Shown here: positions 20,236 through 64,000 of the stretch, piece by piece
Numbering within the stretch: position 1 is the first letter of the stretch
How the letters are laid out: each line of letters begins with the position of its first letter
Assembly: GCA_964035545.1 (NCBI GenBank)
Contig: OZ037768.1
Coordinates: 4,620,741 to 4,684,740 of the forward strand
DNA: 64,000 nucleotides
Direction of reading: 5' to 3'
Source: Bugula neritina
Lineage: Eukaryota; Animalia; Bryozoa
The notes under the pieces: model-generated
Databases searched by the model: none
What the model saw: the letters and a program-made list of their open reading frames with translations, nothing else
What the model was told of the DNA's origin: nothing
Translations under genes and position numbers: made by a program

Positions 20236-23200
20236 ATGGATCATAAACTTATTCTGTTGTTGGCATACATGCATACATTCTCAGTGTTATTTGCTGTGGA
20301 GGACAGTGAATGGCATTCTGTTACAGTGAAGGTAGTAGCACAGCCTTTCTTTTCTTCTCATTTAAATTTAGCTACCAGGGATGATTTGGATAAGTTAACA
20401 GAACTCATAAGCCAGAGGAATAAGTATGTCATTCCAGACCTGATCATATCTGGACCATCAGTAAAAGTCATGACTTTACAACTTAGGAGAGGCCATAACG
20501 CTGTTCTAGATAATAGCACCATACAACATTTCCGTGCTGTAAACCCTCAAGAAGCGTTTAAGGATTTTAATATGGACTCCTGCTATTTTATTGGTGAAAT
20601 AACAGAGTATGACCAGTCATTTGTGTCCTTAGATTTATGCAACGGTGTCAGGGGACAGCTTGAATTTTCTAATTTTCGAGCTACTCTCGACGTCATAGAA
20701 ACCCAAAATTCATCAATACAAATATTTCTAAAATATGAAAAACTATTTGAAACTCTTGATAAAAACTTGACTTGTTCTACCAACGCACCAAAAACTGGTA
20801 AAATAAGCAGAGTAAAGAGACAAACAATAGTAAGTGAACAACTATGGAATTCTAAATACATTGTACTCTTCGTAGTTTGTGATCACAGCATGTATCTCCA
20901 ATATGAATCTTCACCTAAAAAGTGTCTCAAAAGAGTTATGGAAATCATCACATATAGTAATTATTACTTCAGTCAGTTTAACTTATTCATATCACTAACT
21001 AGCATGGAAATATGGAGCACCAGAGACAGAATACCTTACAACACAGTTAATAATGTTGTAGGAAGTCGAATTATCAACAGTTCGTCGCTTGCCAGTGAGT
21101 TCAACTCTTACCGATACAAAAACAAATGGATGCATCGGGGTGATGCGGCACTGCTTATAACAGGAAGAGAACTGGACCACTCAGTGAAAGCTGAAGTAGA
21201 TGGTATCTGCTCTTTAGCTGGTGGAGGTATTGTAATCAGTGACAATCTCGCATGGACCAGACACTCTGCTACTCTTCTAGCTCATGGAATCGCACACCTC
21301 CTTGGTGTAGGCCATGTATCCGATGATGCTGACTGTCGCTGCCCAGCTTCAACATCTTGTATAATGCAGGAACAGATTGGTAAGTTTTACTACAAATATA
21401 TTTTTGATGTTAGACATGCATTTGAGAGCAGAATGTCTCGAAAATCAAGTAATTACAAGGTACAATTTTAGGTGAAAATGGCACAGTAATAGCGGCACAG
21501 GTAAAACTGGCACAAATTGAAGAGTAGGTAAAATTGATGTTAAATTTACCCAAAACCAAGCCCCACAAAAAGCTCAAACCCCAATATTGAAGATGTGCCA
21601 TTTTACCTATAACTTTCCCAGTTGTGCCATTTTTATCTGTACCATTTTTAGCTGTGCCACTTTTACCTGTGCCATTTTGTCAAAAAGTCACAATATCAAT
21701 AGTATTGAGATGTTTTAGAAAGTGTACTTGCTCAGTCTTATATTTAGTAACCACAAGTATTATACTGTGGTTCTTAGGTTCTCAAAGTGAGCAAAAGAGT
21801 TGGTCAGATTGCACAAAAAGACAACTGAGAGAAAATTTGCATCTTGATGGGTTTGCCCCCTGCCTGAAAAATGAACCACCAGAAATAAATTACGCAGTGG
21901 AGTATGACAGCAGATGTGGAGACTTTGTACTGAACCCTGGTGAACACTCTTTACTATAAATTATGGAAAACAATAACCTGCATGATACATCAGGTCTACA
22001 CACGACAAATACAATGTGAATCTTTCAAGAATAAACTCTGCTAGCTATAATTGGATATATCTAAGATATTATTTTCCTTTCTTTTTGTTTAGAAATTATA
22101 TTACAATTGAGAAATAAACTGTTTGTAGGGGAGGAGTGTGATTGTGGGCCAGCAGGTTTATGCGACAACACTTGTTGTGATCCACAGACGTGCAAACTTA
22201 AAAGTAATGCAGCTTGTGCGACAGGTAACTGCATTTCAATTTATACATGCTGAATGGTTTTTATGACGTACAGTTATCATTGTCATAAAATAGGACACAG
22301 GGTCTTGTTTTGGGAACATGCAAATCACACCCTGCTCTGTGTGGATATTGGTTTATCAATTTTTAGTATAAGTCAGTTAGAAGAAAAAATTAGTGACTAT
22401 AAACAAACAAGAAACGTTGTACCTGTACCTCAAAACACATGCAGCCATGTAGCAAAAATCAGAAAATTATTTTACTACAAAAACAGTTGGTAATTTTATT
22501 TTAGGACCATGTTGTGACAAAGGGACATGTAGTATTAAATCATCAAGCGCTATTTGTCGGCCTACAAATGGAGAAACTTGTGACTTACAGGAAACGTGTG
22601 ATGGAGAATCGGAGTGGTGCGGGGAAGACAAACATAGACCAGACGGGACTCCCTGTTTCAACAAAGAAGACTCTCACTGCTATGGAGGTCAATGCAAGTC
22701 ACGGACCTCTCAGTGCCAGCTTATTTATGGTGAAGACTTTGTAAATGCTGAACCAAGTTGCTACGAGGCACATAATTGGAGAGGTGATCGCACATACAAC
22801 ATTGCAATTTTATTTCAAAAACTAGGTAGGTGCAGTAATTGAAAAATTTAGAGAAGATTAAAAGTTTAGCAAGAGAAGTTATGCCCCCACAAGACTTTCA
22901 ACCCGTGCCCAATTGACTAAAATTTCACAATGAAATTAAAGAACTTAGGTTATATCAAGTTCTCCAATACTGCTCCTAAGTGCAATTTTATTCAAACAGA
23001 CTGACTGTAAACTATTGAATGTGCACCAAAACAGCATATATAGTAATTAATATTAGCTAGTAAACTTGTAGGAGATACAAGTGGAAACTGTGGATGGACA
23101 TCAGTTGGCGAATACTCTGCCTGTTACCGAAAAAAAGATGCTTTGTGCGGATTGTTGCATTGCAGCAAAAGAGATGGTGTCAGTACAGATGCTGTTCCTG

Positions 23201-47789: not shown

Positions 47790-50700
47790 ATGTATGTAGT
47801 GCTGCAAAGGGTTTTCTTGTGCCTGCTCCTAACCAATCATCTTGTGCGATGCTAAGTATTCAGTGTGGTAATTTATGAAAATTTGGTTTAAATCATATTA
47901 TGGATTATGATATAAGTATTATAACATTATGTAACTTTTTGTGTACACATAGTCTAACTTAAAAACCTACATTTGTGCTATTAGTATGTTTTCCTGCCTA
48001 GTCACTAGTATTATTATTTACTAAAATGTATATATAATATTGTGTTGTATGTTTGAATCTATAGGTGAGCTGGAAAAACCAGCGGATTGTTGCATCAGCA
48101 CCAAGTCCAGTTCCACATGATGATGAGGGTCTTGGAAGAATATATTGTAAGAAATTACATTTGTGTCAATCAAACCTAACAACGGCAGGTCATATGTTTG
48201 GTAATATTAAATGCCATGTTGGCGAGTAGTTTAACTGTGGACAGTTTGTTGGCTTTTTCTTACCAAGTATCTGGATAGCGGCTAGAAAATGTTGTGTCAA
48301 GGTTCAGTTAGGAAAAGCTTTTGAGCATAAAATTTTTTGCCACACTGAAAAGTAAGGTCATGGTTGTGCTCATTAACAAATACTCCTTTCTTATTTTCTT
48401 ATGTCATTGAGTGAAGCCATAATGATAATTAATAGATTTCTGGAAAAAAACTTTCAGTCATGTGGAATAAATGCTTATGCCAATGACATAGTTCTTCTCA
48501 TTAAAAGCCTTAACCATTTGAAACAAACATGGAGATTTACATCTCATTGATCCAATGGTTATTAGGTATTCTGGGTATAAATGTTTTAATATACAAGTTG
48601 CATTGGTAACATACATACAGGTATACTCTTATGTAGATAATGAGTATGTGGTAATTGAAGACACTGGAACCATTTCTAAGCGTGACTGCGTCAAGGGCCA
48701 TCGTGAATATGAACATCATGAATGTGATTGGTTGATTCATATTGAAAATGGAAGCTCTGTGAGTACCTATAACATATATAGAGCTTTCTTAACTTATATA
48801 CTTTATATGCACTCTTCTAATGTAGATATTTCTCAGTTATTTGTAGTTATTGTATTTAGTTTTAAGGCATTTTCACAAGTTTGGATTCTGCAAAAATGAG
48901 AGTTTTTTCTGCTGTCTTTTTATGACAGCAGAAAGAAACTCTGGCTATTAAGTCTTGAATATCTTATATGTTTTTACTTGGTTGTTGTCTGCTCTCTATA
49001 AACAGTGAATTTCCTTACACTTTTCTTTCACATTTGCTTGTTAGATTACCCAGCCTGTTTACTCCCATCTAAAATCTAAATCTATGTTTTTCAGATGAAT
49101 GTGACCAAGCACATTATATTATAGTGCATGGTGTCATATACAGTGATATACTGAATTACATAATATTATGCTGAATTACATAATAATATGCTGAATTACA
49201 TAATAATATACTAAATTACATAACAATAATATGCTGGTTGCAGATTTCTGCTGAAATTTATGTGGATATTCCAAGCCAACCCACACAAGATGAATGCATT
49301 CACTGCAACGTAGAATATGGGTATTTGCATAACAACTACCACCAGAAAGTGTTGAACCGCAGGCTCTGTTTACAGAATTACACTATATCAGTCAGTATGA
49401 ACTTGCTTTCTGTCATTCATGACTGTTTATAAAATGTGCCTTGTTCAGCTCTGTGCAATGTGATGCAGTTCATTCCATTTATCATAAATTTAGTAATACT
49501 TTGACACTAAAACAAAAATTTTTGAAATTAAAACTATTTATACACAACTGGTTAAATATATTTTTACATGCAAAACATTCTAACGCAAGTAAAATGATTT
49601 AAGTATTCTTTACGTTTGTAATTCATTAAACATATTAATTATATACATTCAGTTGTACATGGTTATATACCTTTGTTTTGACTTTAATTATTACCAATCT
49701 TGAAGAAAAATCGAAAATCTAGTTTAATGCTTTTTCCTATAAAAACTAAGTTGTTTGCTTACAGTTACTTACAATAAAATTATTGAGTAGGTAACTTTTC
49801 AGTTGAATTTTCTGGTTGTAGTACAGTGTGAAGACTTCTTTATGGCTAAAATTCAGCTGCTTGGGCCCATTGGCTCATCATCAGTTAAACTGGACCAATC
49901 AGAATGGTGATCGTATGCAAGGCTTTGTACTCAAGTTCACCGTCAGTAAAGAGCAGGTGGTTGTAGAGGATACCAAGTGGAATCTTTCAACTATATTTGC
50001 CTTTACTGTTTCAATACTTTCCGCTGTGGTACTGTTTAGTATTGGGTTCATCTTACAAAGGTACGGCAGTTTATCTCGTTATACCCTTGTTTATCTTTCA
50101 TAAGTTTATGTATTGTAGAATTACAGTTAGGAATATAACAGTTTTGAAGTGCTGTGCTTATTTTTAAACTTTAAAAGAAATAAACTAAATTTGATTTCAG
50201 ATAGTCAAGGCTTTTTAATAATATCCGTTTATTTCAATAAATCACAAAATGGTAATAGTAAACAACCATTTTATAGATATTTATATGTTTGAGCATAAAA
50301 TAATTTCAAATATAATTTACTATCTTACAATGTTTTTTTTGTTAGGTCTTGCAGAAACCAGTCTATTCAGCACAACCTTCTAGAGAGTCGGCATGAGAAT
50401 GTCCACAGAACAAACTCACGACTAAAGAAGCTGTCGCAAATCTCGTATCCTCAGCATAGACTTGGGGTAAATTTTTAGTAACTTGCTTAACGACCAGACA
50501 AATTGGTATACTGATTATGTAAATACACCTGAAAAGAAAAACCTATTTTCTAACAGATTATAGAAAAGCAAGAACTTACCAATTATTTTCCTGCCAAGTT
50601 TTAAGCAGATAAGTTTTGGTCAGCTTAGCTTTTTGCAAACAGGGTGCTTAGATCAGTAGCATTTTATGCTAGTAAAATTTCACTACTGTATAGAAGGTAA

Positions 50701-53171
50701 ATATTTATTTGTGCTTGATGTACTTTATTTTATCTCTTACAGTTGCATGAAGAGTTTTATAAAAGTATGCATCACAGAAACATGCGTTTCAACCAGCCGG
50801 CTTTCATGAGATCAGTTAACGAGCAAAAGGTAAGATTCGTAAAATAAGCAATTTTCAAACTCAAAATATATTCTATGGTTTGTAAAGTTATGCAAACTTC
50901 TGCTGTTGTTTTTTTGTGCAATTTTAGAGAAGCTCAAATGACGCAGTGGATAAAACATCACCAGTGTTCACAAAGTGCAGGAAAGGTATGGCTACACGAC
51001 ATGTAGACAAGCATATGACAAGAGACCTGAGTCCTACCAGAAGTAACCACACTTACGTGTCTGTCACTCAGTTGTAAGTATTAGTCGTTACGTTGAACAT
51101 TGCAACTTTGTAAACGCACTTTTAGCCTCAACTAATTCAAGTTTCTAAGAGCTAAATGATAAAAAATTACCTGTCAATTGCATGAGGAGGGATGTAAAGG
51201 TTTGCTTAGTTTGGATCTTTAAATTCTGGGTTAGCATTGCAATTTATTTCAGATACAGGCAATTTTTTCATGCGATCAATATTTAACCATGTGTTAAGAA
51301 ACATAAAAGTTTAGTAATCCTGAGCAGCTTCTTTCAGGAAATAACGCAAACCTTGAAGTGAATTGCTGAATCAACTCAACATAAATACGCATGTCACTAT
51401 GCAAATAAACTTCATAATATCCTAGGGAAAAAATATATAAGAGATGTGTTTTATGCAATAATTAATCTCATTTTAGACAATTTTTTGCTCAGTTATGTTG
51501 CATCACCGATTTCTAAAGTATTCATAATTTTGTGTTGGTAAAAATAAGGAGATTTAAATTTTTCAACAAACACAAATAAAATTGCTTTTTATCAAGAAAG
51601 CTTTTAATACACTGACTTTTTAGCTTGAACCATGTTCATTCTGAATCTGAATCAGATACAATAAGACCCCCAACGGCAGGCAGATTTGATGTTGGCCAGC
51701 GTAATATGTTAATACAGGAACTGAAATACACTCCGTGGAGAAAGGTGAGTCATGCTCACGTTGAAGCTGCTGGGATAGGCAGTGGTAATTAAAAGAAAAG
51801 CCAGCTGTACTACATATTCTCCAACTGGATTTTAAAGTAATATGCATAATCAAACACAGCATTGTTACAAGTAATAACTGCCATGTCTTTATTGAGCTTT
51901 TTGTGTAACCAAAAGGTGAAAGCCAGAATTTCTCATCCCAAGCTATCTGTGGAAGACAAAAATCTGTTAAGTGCTACTTCAGGTATGTGTTACTTATTTG
52001 TACAACCACAAGTTTTTAAAAAAAAAAAGTTGGTACATTTTTGAAACTGTCTACTATACATGCTTTATATATATATATTGATAGAAAGTATCAATTTAAA
52101 TAATGGGTAATCCAACTTTCAGTAAGCAGTCATTAGTGTTAATTAAATGACTTTTTTATTCTAAGAGCCAACACTAAAGAAAAGGAAAAAGCATCTTCTT
52201 ACAGCTCCCCGATACACTAGTCCAAAAGTTGATAACGCTTTTCACATAATAGTGACCAGAAGTTCCACTAAAAGGAAGAGATTTCCAGAAGGTTGTGGTA
52301 TTTGATAAAATTGATATTTAAAATTACTGTTTTTGACATAAACTGTATACAAAAACCATGTCACATTTTATAAAAATGCATCATTTTATTATGTGATTTT
52401 ATGAACTTGCTATTTTACAGAAACTGTAGAGGCTAATGATGCAGAAAATGGAGAAGCTAACACCAGCATTCAAAGTTTGCCAGAGATGGCAGCGAATAAA
52501 TATAAACATCATATAAAATATCACAGCACATCACGGTAGGGTGTATTGCCATTATAATATTTACAAATATATTTCTGCATGTTTTAAAAAATATAAAAGT
52601 CATTCTATGATTGGTTTTATTTTTCAATTTAGTTACTACCTGTATATGAGCTGAACTGACTACATTCATACAGGTTATTCTGGCTCGATTTCTTGCAAAA
52701 TAAGCATCACGTTTAGTTTGCTAGGTAAAGCTTTCATTTGTGGTGGCATTTTCTCAGAGTCTAGTAGGAATGATATTTTATACAAACATTTATATCACTA
52801 AAAATATTATTTTCAAGTTGAAAGAATGTTGGTTATTTGTTTTATGGTAGTTTAAGTACGATTAGGTTATATATCTATTTGCCTGAAGCTATTTTCTGTT
52901 GCATTGCTTATTACTTTTTGTAGGTGCATATTTTGCTATATATTTGCTTAGTTCCTGAAAATATTTATTAAGTTATCATATTTTATACTCTTAGCTTTGA
53001 TGCATGAAAAAATTTATTTGCATTGAATTATTATGCTTGGTTTGTTTTAGAGTGTTGAGAAGTAACACCCACATAGAAAGTTGTAGAGATAAGAGAAAGT
53101 TTGTTTCAACTCCAAAGAGACTGGTTAAAAAATTCACATCTCATAGATATCCAGACAGAATCTACACATAG
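47790..53171 (+). CDS. Uncharacterised single-pass membrane protein: divergent CUB-like ectodomain, TM, long basic cytoplasmic tail (5' end uncertain)
   Basis: Phase-consistent exons (approx.) 48065-, 48637-48758, 49244-49390, 49822-50060, 50346-50466, 50743-50829, 50928-51073, 51623-51743, 51916-51982, 52166-52291, 52421-52515, 53051-53171. CUB-like pattern GTISK...Y..HECDWLIHIENGSS|ISAEI...DEC..C.VEY...RLC...SLWLKFS...GFVLKFTV; TM IFAFTVSILSAVVLFSIGFIL. The candidate signal-peptide exon 47790-47867 contains an in-frame TAA. Confidence 0.7.
49150..49233. repeat. 20-bp tandem repeat (CTGAATTACATAATAATATG)n x4 next to an acceptor
   Basis: Ends a few nt before ttgcag|ATT at 49243/49244. Confidence 0.8.
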
Positions 53172-54625
53172 CAGTCATGTGTTGAACTAGTGCACTAGCC
53201 TTATGTGAATTCCTAGCTTCATACAAATCATGTGTCATGTTCAAAGCTATTATAGTTACTCGACTTTTTATTGCCTCAGTTGTAAAAAATATTCACATTT
53301 ATTTGATTCAGAATACTACTAATTTTTTTATTTACCAGATTTAGTTTTCAGTACTTTTATGTTTTTTGCAAATCTAGTCTGTGCAGTTTTTTGTGAAATA
53401 AAATTAAAATTTAGTCTAATGCATCATGATGAGTTTAGGAATAGAAAATAGTGATCAAAATCATCTTTAAACGAACATATGTATTAAGTATTTGTACAAT
53501 CTATAAAATTCATCATATAATTGTTATAGTCTGCACAGGTAATACAAATATGTATAACTCTGATCTTCAATGTTTGGGGCTCAACTTTGCTGCACATTTT
53601 AACAGGTATTCAAAACCACTGGCTTTGAATATGACTTCAACTATTCATAAAAAAGTGAAGCATGTTGGAAGAACTTTAATGTTGTTCATTTCTTCTCAAC
53701 TACACAACATATATTTTTATAAAATGTGTGACAGTCATACAGAAAAATTGGATCTTGTCCAAAACTTCTAGCTTTCTTGCACATCCTTAGCTTTTATCTC
53801 AACTTCTAGGCTTTCAAGTATGACAAGCTATGGACCACCCAAGATAATATAATTGCATTAGCTTGAGATCAGCTCTAAATTCCAGGAACTATTCCGTTAT
53901 ACAACTTATAATTTTGAGCATTTTATAATCCAAGGTAGGCCTATTATATATAATGTTTTGTTGGTATTTTTGTTTTACTAGAAGATGTTTGGTACTTCCA
54001 CAGTTTAATCCATTAAATCAAGTTTTTGATTAAAACATGATTGCTGCCAACTGTTAATTGTTGTATATAAACTGCTTTACTAGCTACAAATATAGATAAT
54101 TATTATATAAATACTGATTAATGCAGTTCTATGCAATTTATAAAGAGTCATGAAGCTAGCTTAAACTTGTGTAAAGAATACTTGCTGCATGTATTGGCCA
54201 TCTACTCTAGCATCTTACTAATCTCTATACATTATACAGCTGTGGGTTATCTTCTCATATGTTCTAAAATCTAAGGCAGCAATTATAAAAGTGATATATA
54301 AAGTTAAAAAATGCTTTTTTTGAGAATTAAGTTATTCTCAAAGTTGAATTTACATTTACATTTACACTGTCAGAATTTTTACATAGATAATCTATTTGAA
54401 ACTAATGTTTAATGATGGTTAAGTTATAGTTCACAACTTTTAGGAAAATAGATATATCTATCTTCCTAAAAGACTATAAAACTCTAAATAGTGACACTCA
54501 TTCATCATTGTGCCTGTTACTATTTTATATATATTAGTTCACCTTGTAGTGTAAAAGTTATAGGAGTTATTTTCTCGTTTAGGCAGCTACCATACAGCTA
54601 TACCAAAACAGCCCAGTTGGATAAC

Positions 54626-56167
54626 ATGGAAGGAAGTGATTACGTACAAGCCTATTATTTATTTCTAATGGCCTTCATGATTGTATTACAAGTAATAAAT
54701 TTAGTATTGCTTGGCACCATCATGTTTAGGTAAAAGTATACAGTAGATATAATACATACTCTACTTGCATGGAATTGCTATTTCATGTATTCTTTAACTA
54801 CCCTAACGGGGGGGGGGGGGGGTTTCTGTTGTAAAAACTAAAGCTATATGTTACTATTTTTTACACAATAGGAATTAAATATATGTTACTTTAAAATATA
54901 GGCAGCGCAACATGGTTAGAAGGAGAGAGGGATGCCCTACACAACCCAGACTACGATTCTCCACCAGTGCAGCTAAAAATGTTAGTATATAGCAGTGCTG
55001 AGCCAATATTCAGTCTGTAGGCTACTCAGCGTTATAATATGTTGGGATTTATTTTCTGCTACAATTGAATTGCTTTTATGTGGGTATTTTGTGTTTTATT
55101 CAGCATTCTGTCACAGAGCCTCAAAGTACACAAACTGTTTTCCGGTGTTGAATAAATATATTTTATAAGTCACATGTTGTGCCAAAGGTACAAAATATTA
55201 AAAGTACCGACATCAATGAACAAAAAAATGAATTTTAAAGATACTGAAATGTTAAAATACCCAACAGTTTATTAGCAACCTGATTTAATCTCAACAACAT
55301 CTGCATTTTCAACACCATGTTAGCTTCAGTAAATTGTTAGGAAATTTTAAGAAAACACACACCTGTGGTTGCAATCCTATATATTGTTATAGATGCTCCA
55401 TATGGATTCATCAACAGTGTTAACTCAATTTTATGTCTATTTTTCCACTTGTAAATTTTTTTATCAATACATAAAATACCTAACACCTCATTCAGAAATA
55501 CCAGCTTTATACTAAATGCATTATGGTCTTGCAACATATTATGTTATTTTAAAGGAAGAAATAAAATACAATGCTTGATTATATCCAATTTTGCATTCTA
55601 GTCATACACACCTGAAAGACATAGCATAAAGATGGAGAGTGGTGATGAAAGATATGTTTTACCAACAGAAGTTCAGGCTGTAAGAAGTGATCATACTTAC
55701 CTGTCTATAATACCAAGGTAGGGTCAGTGATAAAAGCATATGCAAATTTTAGACATACCAAATTTATGCATGGTATGACTGGTTTAAATAAAAACTGAAA
55801 TACTTGTTGCATGGATAACTGTGTGTATCTGCGTTGATGTAAAGAGTGCTTGTTACTTACTCAATCATTTGTTGTAGTGAAGCAGATGTGGAGAAAGAAG
55901 GGACATCCTACAGTGTCAATTCAGTAAGTGAGCATCTTTTCAAGACAGGTCAGATTAAAAGACAGGATGAGCAAACAAGGATGTATGAAAACCGGCCACT
56001 GGTAAGACCGGACATAAAATGGTGCTACTGTGAAAAGCTAAATTCAATTAATACATATGCATAGGTAAAAAAAAGTTTTATCAATTTTGATTTAGGTAGA
56101 GAGTAGATCGATAAACAGCAGTAACACATCAGTTGTGCTCAATATTGTGGAACCAGAAAACAAATAA
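54626..56167 (+). CDS. Uncharacterised 164-aa single-pass membrane protein with almost no ectodomain and tyrosine motifs (transmembrane adaptor-like)
   Basis: Good start context aacATGg. Exons 54626-54729, 54902-54980, 55602-55717, 55878-56001, 56096-56167 all join in phase. Sequence: MEGSDYVQAYY-[LFLMAFMIVLQVINLVLLGTIMF]-RQRNMVRRR...RYVLP...RSDHTYLSII...MYENRPL...PENK*. Confidence 0.75.
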
Positions 56168-56780
56168 CTGATGGTCATTGCAGCTGAAAGGTACATTTGG
56201 ATAAATATAAACCAAAATAAATATTATCTATTGCAAATTTTTGTGTATTCACCATTTGGATTCATTCTAGTGTCATTTCCAGGATAAATGGGCTAAAATT
56301 TTTGTAATAAAAAGTTTTATGTACATATATCTTGCATTGGTTTATGTAATTTACCAAAGTCATTAGTTTCAACAGTTCATAAAAAAGTTAACTGATCATA
56401 TTCTCCACATAAATTGAGAAAACAACTCCTTCCTCCACAAGTGTTATTTTATTAGCATAATACAAAACAGATGAGTTTATCAGTCAAATAATTTTTATTA
56501 CATAACTATGATATATAACAACATACTGCATAACTGACATTGTTGATTTCATAACATATTACCAATCCACTAGAAAAACACTTTGAATTCAACATGTCTC
56601 TATTGATACACTTTCAGATGTCAATAGTTTGAAAAAAGACTACCTAGATACAACACTGGCAACATTTACAATACTTTGAAAGATCTACCATTACTCTGTT
56701 TACATCCTAATGTAGATATATGTATTGTAAAGCTGATGTGTTGTCTGAACTAATTATGCAAAGTGTATATGTACAGTTTA

Positions 56781-61676: not shown

Positions 61677-62484
61677 AACGTATTAGTTGTTTTAAATTTA
61701 TCAGGTTTCTCTATCCTCATCAGCCAAAAGTATATGACCCTGCCTTTAAAGTTTAAAGTTTAGGTTTTAGTTATAAGTTAAAGTTAAGAGACTTTCACTT
61801 TCAGTTTGAGTTTCACTTTTGAGATACTGGCTGAGTATAACTCTTCATTTTGATACTGTTTTTGGATTATAATTTCCATCAAAACGAATAGTAAAATATG
61901 TTGAAATTAGTAGTTCAACAACAAATATTTGCACTGTATGAGTGTAAGCATATTTTTGGTTCATTGTCATTGTGATTGTATAATTTGTTACATTCAATTT
62001 CATTGTCACTGTCAGTCTTATTTTTATAAAGTTTAAATATATCAACAAAAGACATTGACTAAGCTGAATGCTGAGTAATGAATATAACCTTTTTAGTAAT
62101 TTGCAGAATTTGACATTGTTTAGAGTAATCCTATATGTTATCTTAAACCCGACTGTAATAAAGTTCTATATTGTATTTATGGGCCCCTCTTCAATTGGTG
62201 TTATGAAACAGAGAAGTCACTAAAGACAATTAATGATTTTCAATGCTATAAATTCATCTATTTATTAAGCCATGCTTGGGGGTTAGATTTTTTCAAAGTA
62301 GTGCTAATAAATATGTCATCTATGAGAGAAATAAAGCAATTCATTCAGTTACATGGTTAAGGAATTCCTATTGCATCTACTTTCTGCATCATCGTACATT
62401 TATTTTAGATTGGACAAATATATTTTCAACTAGTTATAACATGCTGGAGTGATAGCCCAAGTTACTAATATTACAATATGAGCT

Positions 62485-63587
62485 ATGGATGATAGTAGTA
62501 ATTTAGATTTCAAAAATACACTTGCTGCGAATGGAAGTGGAGAAACTGGAAAATATTCGGACACCAATAAGTCTTCGGTACAGATCCAACCAGATGCACC
62601 AGGAAATGTTTTCACCTCAGAAGGTGGTGAAACCAGTTCACACAAGATGCAAACTGAAACTCATTCTTGTGAGAAAAGCATATGCAAATCAGAAATAGAT
62701 GTATCTGAGAAAACTGTAGCAATAGAACAAAATAGTAAGGTAAATGTTTCAATTATTTTCAGCTGGATTCTGTTTTGATACACATACAAGGCAATAAAAT
62801 AACTTTATCTTTTGAAAATAATGAAACATTGAATATTTTTGCCAACAATATTATAAGTGATGTGTTGATGTTTCAACTTTATCCCATAAACAAACTACTT
62901 AGATTTTACTGAGGATTTAAAATCAATTGAACACTTTCTCTGATTTTCTGGCTTCATTATAATTCTAGCTACGGAGTTTGAGGCAAAGAAAGTCAGCCGA
63001 CGCACTAACTCCCACTCCTCCTAAAAAGAAAAGACACAGTTCTACTGATAATAAGTCTAATGTAACGCAAACTAAACAAGGAGCATCTGAATCAATGAAT
63101 ACAACAGGTAGTCACTAAGTCCTGCTGAAAGTCAAGTGGGGCTTGGGCCAAGTTTAATAGAACTTTTTTTTTGGCATGTTTACTAAGTTTTTCTTCATCT
63201 TTAATGTAAGCAACCAATGAAGACCACTGTCTATAGAGCTACTGTTGTTAATAATATGAAATATTGATGTTTTGTCACACCCATGAAAGTGAATTGGGTT
63301 TCTTCGTCTATATCTTCAACTAAGTTGTTTATAAATCTTCACATTAATAGATTGGCTTTTGCAAGAGGATGTTCATTATAAAATATTTCTTCTACTTGTA
63401 ATTTATAGCTATTGTGGGTATTGATCTATATGTTGGCATTTGTAAATATGGAGCATTTCTTTTCTTTATTATGTTCAGAGAAAAATAGTCCAAAACAAAC
63501 GGAGAAAAGAAAACTGCTCCCAAGAAGGTCAGGAATTGAATGGAAAGTAGGCTGTAAATTAGAGGCCATGGACTTCTTGAAGAAATG
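62485..63587 (+). CDS. PHF20L1: PHF20/PHF20L1-like Tudor-domain protein, first three coding exons (continues beyond the window)
   Basis: Exons 62485-62739, 62969-63107, 63479-63587 join in phase. LPRRSGIEWKVGCKLEAMDFLKKW matches the start of the first Tudor domain of PHF20/PHF20L1 ([23 protein letters not shown]). An NLS-like PPKKKR precedes it. Confidence 0.8.
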
Positions 63588-64000
63588 GTGTGTTTGCTAT
63601 GCAATGGCACTGCTAGATCATCAAACTTGTTCTACATTTTCTGTATTCTATCATTTTCATTATTATGTAGTATTATATGTATGGCTATGTGCTATATTTT
63701 GTACACTATATTTTAGTTTAAATAAACTCAACATCATTCATAAAATAGCTTGGTTTTAGTTAATATAATTATACAAGAGCAAGAGGTTTTCCGTAGCCAA
63801 TGGAATATGCAGAAGAATGTAAACTCTATTCAAGTATAATAATAAGTAACTAACTTTACAGAAAGTGTTAAAGCTTCTTTCATACAGCTGTACAGCTATG
63901 CTTTGTCAATAGAACAGCTTACAAAGTTATATAATACTGTGCCCTTCTATTTACTTTGTTTGAGGTGGTATAGAATAAAAGCACATGCTTTAGGTACAAG

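Follow-up and report, generated by a model that had tools for sequence, protein, structure and literature searches.

Does a small membrane-protein gene that sits next to a receptor gene, and shares with it a tyrosine motif in the cytoplasmic tail, descend from that receptor, and do the two proteins act together? This question is raised by two adjacent genes, hereafter gene A and gene B, on the plus strand of a 64,000-nucleotide (nt) stretch of the bryozoan Bugula neritina (assembly GCA_964035545.1, contig OZ037768.1, positions 4,620,741 to 4,684,740; C4:4620741-4684740 in the genome of 216,009,554 bases in 321 pieces that we searched). We call the whole stretch the window, and all positions below follow its numbering. 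The modeled product of gene A has 463 amino acids (aa) and consists of a signal peptide, a Pro-rich stalk, one divergent CUB-like domain, a transmembrane (TM) helix and a non-catalytic tail, and that of gene B has 164 residues, with about 8 predicted to lie outside the membrane, followed by a single TM helix, a basic segment and a five-tyrosine tail. The original prediction, made from the letters of the DNA, held that the two genes are diverged paralogues that form a paired signaling module with the logic of immune or recognition receptors. This interpretation is partly supported by the results reported here. That is, A and B are probably tandem paralogues as judged from their exons, and we favor, with moderate confidence, the view that they represent a receptor and its headless duplicate, both retaining one predicted SH2-docking tyrosine, which we consider the most likely reading of the locus; joint action of A and B, or an immune role for them, is unsupported.

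The connection between the two genes is a YxxΦ site, H-T-Y-[VL]-S-[VI], which appears as RSNHTYVSV starting at 51039 in gene A and as RSDHTYLSI starting at 55683 in gene B (consensus RS[ND]HTY[VL]S[VI]). As originally described, the Arg codon of the motif begins 35 nt before a GT donor in both genes (51073/51074 in A and 55717/55718 in B), both exons run from phase 0 to phase 2, and the two sequences agree at 20 of their first 24 nt (23/35 overall), with the identity outside the 24 nt being 3/11 just downstream and 12/30 upstream. The best ungapped score in exon-by-exon comparison of A and B (a score of 40) was matched by 4 of 1000 codon shuffles of all tail exons, the score anchored at the exon ends was equaled in 2 of 20,000 shuffles, and the best in-frame 24-mer in 300 shuffles reached 18 matches as opposed to the 20 observed; the match is thus beyond chance by the shuffling check that the original prediction had proposed. 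With both peptides held fixed and codons chosen independently, 20 or more matches out of 24 would be reached at P=0.011, and this codon identity beyond the shared peptide favors descent over convergence. A profile built from the motif segments of the two genes and run over the 216-Mb genome recovered only the sites of A and B plus one chance match in the 3' region of a G-protein-coupled receptor (GPCR) gene, and all five hits of a motif-plus-donor pattern in the JGI metagenomes were unrelated. Candidate paralogues elsewhere (L002, L005, L008 and L059) were rejected, as they proved to be a tandem repeat, non-coding sequence, intronic DNA of a different gene and the GPCR 3' region. Three putative small CUB-like receptors at another place in the genome (s1-457666) matched neither the motif nor any of the gene A profiles.

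The exon architecture around the motif is also shared. The TM exons of both genes end in a split AG/G Arg codon (at 50060 and 54729) and are followed by a basic juxtamembrane exon from phase 2 to phase 0, as had been noticed before, and, when the symmetric exon 7 of gene A is set aside, the phases around the motif are 2,0,2,0 in both genes, an agreement with a chance of about 0.012 under generic animal phase frequencies. The original prediction saw little other similarity between A and B, which stands for the TM and juxtamembrane exons but was slightly too strong for the exon that follows the motif: exon 9 of A and exon 4 of B (121 vs. 124 nt) align end to end (p=0.044), and each has a Tyr six residues before its end. 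The motif, the codon identity, the four intron phases and the weakly aligning exon after the motif together support the proposal that the genes are diverged paralogues.

On the sequence evidence, gene A is real, with orthologous exons of matching phases and purifying selection between two alleles. Its exons 2-6 are orthologous in four other animals, where contigs L010-L016 hold them with the same phases, near-equal lengths and mostly 38-53% identity; the narrow distribution, together with the 89% nucleotide identity of one contig, indicates that these animals are presumably bryozoans. For instance, exon 3 measures 122 nt in the window, L011 and L012 alike (45% aa identity), exon 5 has orthologues in all four species (44-53%), and orthologous forms of exon 6 are found in L012 (121 nt, 50%) and L013 (124 nt, 20%). 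In L016, exons have changed less than introns (p=0.016). The stalk differs strongly in length among species, the L011 exon (L011:108-354) being three times longer (82 vs. 27 codons), Pro/Thr-rich and built of PPVPE-type repeats. A second allele was available from sequencing run X1, which behaves as DNA (two alleles, intron coverage); relative to the window, the listed part of exons 1-5 carries 12 synonymous vs. 5 non-synonymous changes, a small sample that nonetheless indicates purifying selection on the ectodomain. Allelic polymorphism, which the original prediction had named as a check, is therefore not of a highly non-synonymous kind, and there was no sign of diversifying selection on the ectodomain in this one other allele and its partial change list. 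Both genes are single-copy in the 216-Mb genome for every exon searched, the copy counts being lower bounds.

Gene A starts at 47790 in our model, and a first exon running to 47867 was rejected, since this longer form has an in-frame TAA at codon 22. The second allele in X1 keeps the GT at 47844, has lost that at 47868, and shows 5 changes within the 25 nt 47844-47868 vs. 1 in the preceding 54 nt; hence, exon 1 most likely ends at 47843, which gives a stop-free 463-residue protein. Our splice-site matrix was trained on the gene model's own sites and was not used for ranking the exon 1 alleles. A strong donor-like site (GAT/GTATGT) at 47791 overlaps the start codon, and splicing there would drop the signal peptide exon, which could be regulatory or unproductive. 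For exon 3, an acceptor at 48621 was rejected because the orthologues begin in phase 1 at the 48637 site. Intron 3 contains a 20-nt tandem repeat (about 4-5 copies, 49128-49227), the length of which probably varies, with raised depth, insertions and loose ends at this place in X1. The least certain part of the gene is exons 10-12, which have a weak acceptor score at 51916 and neither orthologue nor RNA support. An X1 contig of low depth (15) lacks 600 nt at 52196-52797, with exons 11 and 12 among them; its short side is 21 nt, its ends are non-canonical, and it is probably an artefact.

The CUB-like ectodomain proposed for gene A is a reasonable but unproven assignment. CUB domains are beta-sandwiches in which a set of motifs (G-x-I, C-x-W-x-I, a central Cys pair, L-x-L-x-F and a terminal GF strand) follow one another over about 110 residues. 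Against a profile built from the canonical CUB exons of the Bugula genome, exon 3 matches the N-terminal half (E=7e-4) and exon 5 the C-terminal half (E=0.003), in this order and each with 0/120 column shuffles doing as well, with exon 4 staying below significance by itself. Six Cys are invariant, including a CxxC. The Tyr-Glu-Asp-Asp signature of the calcium-binding CUB subset (PMC10850435) appears to be missing, in alignments read by eye, its acidic positions being occupied by invariant Pro, Gly and Cys-x-Gly. Exon 5 modeled alone with AF2 gave two strands and a confident helix at 55-78, exon 4 alone folded at low confidence, Foldseek and ESM Atlas searches with single exons returned nothing usable, and the locus is absent from the 138 Pfam CUB matches in the genome. 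A profile search with exon 5 gave eight hits, three of which (P0005, P0007 and P0008) are repeat-rich and were treated as noise. Two further features are invariant in all five species (window 49822-50058, L010-L013), a W-x-x-S-x-x-F-A where the TM helix begins on its outer side and, in the CUB-like C-terminal half, a loop insertion with H-H-x-x-x-W; gene B has neither feature, and they are a possible dimer or ligand surface. We view gene A as an old, single-copy and probably bryozoan-restricted type I membrane receptor, and it would represent a family of CUB-like receptors without catalytic function that is so far undescribed and is marked by its own pattern of cysteines.

The support for gene B is weaker than that for gene A, although in a diverged lineage of Bugula its exons 4-5 are under constraint. 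This lineage is represented by a JGI contig (L060) that is 88% identical to the window and covers exons 4-5, where 8 of 159 nt differ, without indels, vs. 75/707 plus indels in the flanks (p=0.017). Exon 4 has 4 substitutions in 87 nt and no indel, with MYENRP and the donor identical, and exon 5 has 4 substitutions in 72 nt with acceptor, frame and stop kept; 4 of the 7 changed codons are non-synonymous. In addition, two JGI contigs carry a called 29-aa peptide (P0010) that is identical to the motif part of exon 3; these contigs may come from the same diverged sample. As for the product, the adaptor-like build that had been proposed (a short outside part, one TM helix and a tyrosine tail) is supported, the predicted helix having a hydropathy of 2.5. 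The tail of 128 aa has its five Tyr in YTPE, YVLP, YLSI, YSVN and YENR, a single Cys lies about ten residues after the TM helix with no juxtamembrane CxxC, and a Pfam scan revealed no credible domain in the exons scanned. The acceptor ahead of the first coding exon lies at 54583, and 14 open codons (54583-54625) precede the ATG, so that the outside part would grow to about 23 residues if these were used, the start being our choice from the sequence. These open codons are in frame with the phase-2 donors of gene A, and chimeric A-B transcripts are possible in principle. There is no convincing upstream coding exon for gene B in 52540-54583 and no remnant of the gene A ectodomain in the 2 kb ahead of gene B.

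Based on these results, we propose that a tandem duplication, either of the whole ancestor of gene A or of its part from the TM exon onward, gave rise to gene B, and that gene B would now be without the ectodomain exons and one symmetric tail exon, having diverged past recognition save for one site. The Tyr of this site would most likely be phosphorylated by a Src-family kinase and bound by an SH2 protein, in the manner of Y734 (YAVI) of CDCP1. Gene A would then be a receptor with a mucin-like stalk, a disulfide-rich CUB-like domain lacking calcium-binding residues and a disordered tail without enzyme domain, and gene B, with its YxxP and YxN sites in addition, a ligand-blind membrane scaffold of the transmembrane-adaptor type. 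The immunoreceptor tyrosine-based inhibitory and switch motifs (ITIM and ITSM) have S/I/V/L and T, respectively, at position -2 of YxxI/V/L, and both genes have His there. The corresponding activation motif (ITAM) consists of two YxxL/I separated by about 6-12 residues, but in B the Tyr that comes next (YSVN) lies 17 residues further along, in A (YTPW) about 40, and neither site fits YxxL/I. The same PTB-type site in both genes, as first proposed, was not found, since NxxY (Asn at -3) is present in A only and B has Asp.

Several observations weigh against this proposal. No significant similarity links A and B in their TM and juxtamembrane exons, and about 0.7 chance matches as strong as the one at the motif would be expected over all 20,000 adjacent gene pairs. 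No distant orthologue of gene B, or of either motif exon, was found, in searches that are insensitive to short exons; in particular, word searches with the motif exons and with exon 4 and the TM exon of gene B gave only the identical gene B peptide, and such searches need three shared 5-mers and see similar-length proteins only, so that blanks carry little weight. Single exons of gene A had no CUB match in Pfam (PF00431) or PDB, nor had those of its orthologues in Pfam. An Arg at -5 is unusual in a Src substrate. Finally, an RNA run covering the locus was sought and none was found, so that the transcripts of A and B are unconfirmed.

The main functional rival accepts the common ancestry but views the YxxΦ site as a trafficking signal, which the mu-subunit of AP-2 or AP-1 would recognize in endocytosis or in basolateral sorting. 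Both YVSV and YLSI conform to YxxΦ, the upstream context is basic and non-acidic, that is, atypical for Src substrates, and the CDCP1 site also controls surface levels (PMC4395315). However, the R-S-x-H-T identity extends five residues upstream of the Tyr, beyond what mu2 needs, and gene B has the extra SH2-type sites; we consider this trafficking reading unlikely. We rank below it, and likewise as unlikely, the paired module of the original prediction, in which A would sense a ligand and B would be a co-expressed signaling partner or competitor in the style of paired immune receptors. It is consistent with the adjacency, the common motif and the adaptor-like build of B, and with the polar Gln and Asn in the TM helix of B, which could mediate helix contacts; moreover, cognate receptor/co-receptor gene pairs exist in Botryllus, a colonial chordate (PMC12582321). 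It is at odds with TM helices that lack a charged residue in both A and B and offer no charged pair, with the spacing of the motif, which fails that of ITIM, ITSM and ITAM, and with the purifying selection on the ectodomain of A and the single copy of each gene, as opposed to the multi-copy families with related ectodomains and opposing tails that characterize paired receptors. Further, gene A carries its own motif and would be able to signal without B, and duplication alone explains the adjacency.

The remaining alternatives concern how the resemblance arose. An unrelated small TM gene could have received the motif-end tract of A by partial duplication or gene conversion, and the confinement of the identity largely to 24 nt, with the 20/24 match exceeding the peptide expectation and the rest unalignable, would agree with such a transfer; yet the equal distance to the donor across an unrelated last 11 nt, the four matching phases and the weak alignment of the exon that follows better fit descent of whole exons, and we regard this alternative as improbable. 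Convergence or chance, with two unrelated tyrosine-tail membrane genes ending up as neighbors, is very improbable in our view. The expectation over all adjacent gene pairs given above leaves room for it, a genome search with the unanchored DNA pattern gives 2 chance and 8 control hits, and TM exons commonly end in a split Arg codon. Nevertheless, fewer than 0.01 cases would be expected among adjacent TM-TM gene pairs (TM frequencies being assumed), and convergence does not predict the codon identity. Least probable of all is that A and B form one transcription unit, in which exons of A are spliced into exons of B for alternative tails. Splicing from the phase-2 donors of A at 50060 and 51073 to the acceptor of B at 54583 would keep the frame, and each tail could exchange its phase-0 and phase-2 junctions with the other. 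Against this, gene A has a stop of its own and, at 53397, an AATAAA that likely serves as polyadenylation signal and divides A from B, the 14 open codons preceding the ATG of B are unremarkable, and a strong donor at 53934 suggests that gene B has its own non-coding first exon.

The features of the locus are collected in the table. The MUL1-type and MRPL44 genes that flank A and B should be useful synteny anchors for locating the two genes in other bryozoans. Elsewhere in the window, a 411-codon open reading frame at 20236-21471 contains a reprolysin (M12B) metalloprotease domain (E=4.5e-29), and acidic, Ser/Thr-rich exon-like coding stretches on the plus strand at 62423-63760, near the window end, are probably the start of another gene.

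Table. Coordinates of genes A and B and of their flanking genes in the window.
Feature	Start	End	Strand	Phase (start to end)	Content
MUL1-type gene	43046	46661	+		GIDE+RING ligase; flanks gene A
Gene A exon 1	47790	47843	+	donor (47844) phase 0	Signal peptide, hydrophobic run; 18 codons
Gene A exon 2	48065	48146	+	0 to 1	Signal peptide end and Pro-rich stalk; L011 exon has same phases
Gene A exon 3	48637	48758	+	1 to 0	CUB-like N-terminal third (C-x-W-x-I strand)
Gene A exon 4	49244	49390	+	0 to 0	CUB-like middle (CxxC, EYG, RxC); orthologues 38%
Gene A exon 5	49822	50060	+	0 to 2	Last CUB-like strands and TM helix; ends in split Arg codon
Gene A exon 6	50346	50466	+	2 to 0	Basic juxtamembrane
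Gene A exon 7	50743	50829	+	0 to 0	Open frame with splice sites; absent from gene B
Gene A exon 8	50928	51073	+	0 to 2	Motif RSNHTYVSV at 51039-51065
Gene A exon 9	51624	51744	+	2 to 0	Weak full-length match to gene B exon 4
Gene A exon 10	51916	51982	+		Frames of exons 10-12 join
Gene A exon 11	52205	52291	+		
Gene A exon 12	52421	52539	+		Includes stop
First AATAAA after gene A stop	53397	53402	+		Putative signal
Gene B first coding exon	54626	54729	+	ends in 2	Short N-terminus and TM helix, no signal peptide (predicted)
Gene B exon 2	54902	54980	+	2 to 0	Basic juxtamembrane
Gene B exon 3	55602	55717	+	0 to 2	YVLP (YxxP); motif RSDHTYLSI at 55683-55709
Gene B exon 4	55878	56001	+	2 to 0	YSVN and YENR (YxN)
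Gene B exon 5	56096	56167	+		Runs to stop codon; AATAAA at 56216 and 56306
MRPL44 gene	56781	60360	-		Flanks gene B

How does this locus compare with known systems? DAP12, FcR-gamma and CD3-zeta are small, ectodomain-less membrane proteins, as is the predicted product of gene B (its partnering with A being only a proposal), but gene B has neither an ITAM nor an acidic TM residue and gene A has no basic TM residue. The Fester/FcoR system of Botryllus likewise consists of neighboring genes for membrane proteins that bear tyrosine motifs, again in a colonial animal, although its genes are of the Ig superfamily, multi-copy, highly polymorphic and co-expressed, and its co-receptor carries canonical ITIMs or hemITAMs (PMC12582321), whereas A and B are single-copy and under purifying selection, and have no ITIM or hemITAM.

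For gene A, the closest likeness is to the receptors of the CDCP1/DCBLD type, which also span the membrane once and join a CUB-type ectodomain to a tail devoid of enzyme activity. Y734 of CDCP1 has His at -2, as in the motif of A and B. This YxxI site (YAVI), the main one of CDCP1, binds Src-family kinases and SHP2 (PMC4395315). Unlike CDCP1, gene A has one CUB-like domain in about 460 aa and is without the second nearby Tyr of the ITAM-like pair, and no sequence similarity to this type was found in the exon 5 profile search or the single-exon searches; we view the likeness as a resemblance rather than homology.

To our knowledge, transmembrane adaptors have been described chiefly in vertebrate leukocytes, few of their ancestors can be traced, and a juxtamembrane CxxC is a trait of the raft-type ones only. 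With very few residues outside the membrane, a single TM helix and a multi-tyrosine tail that is not enzymatic, as in LAT, NTAL, LAX, PAG and GAPT, the predicted product of gene B corresponds to the structural definition of a transmembrane adaptor (PMC3342071), without the CxxC. It differs from these proteins in lacking this CxxC (which LAX has), in having one YxN only, in showing no sequence homology to them, and in that gene B appears to derive from the neighboring receptor gene, with its tyrosine phosphorylation being only predicted. That gene B is a genuine invertebrate transmembrane adaptor born by ectodomain loss, which works with or against A through the shared phosphotyrosine, is a stronger claim that we hold to be unlikely; if true, however, it would provide a traceable origin for a LAT/PAG-like scaffold, with the parent gene adjacent, and a new bryozoan receptor-adaptor module. 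The conversion of a receptor to an adaptor at this locus is plausible, and A and B may share a downstream binder. While the building plans of both A (a non-catalytic CUB receptor) and B (a transmembrane adaptor) are already known, a receptor beside its headless duplicate would illustrate one route to such scaffolds, and the shared motif marks the residue of interest.

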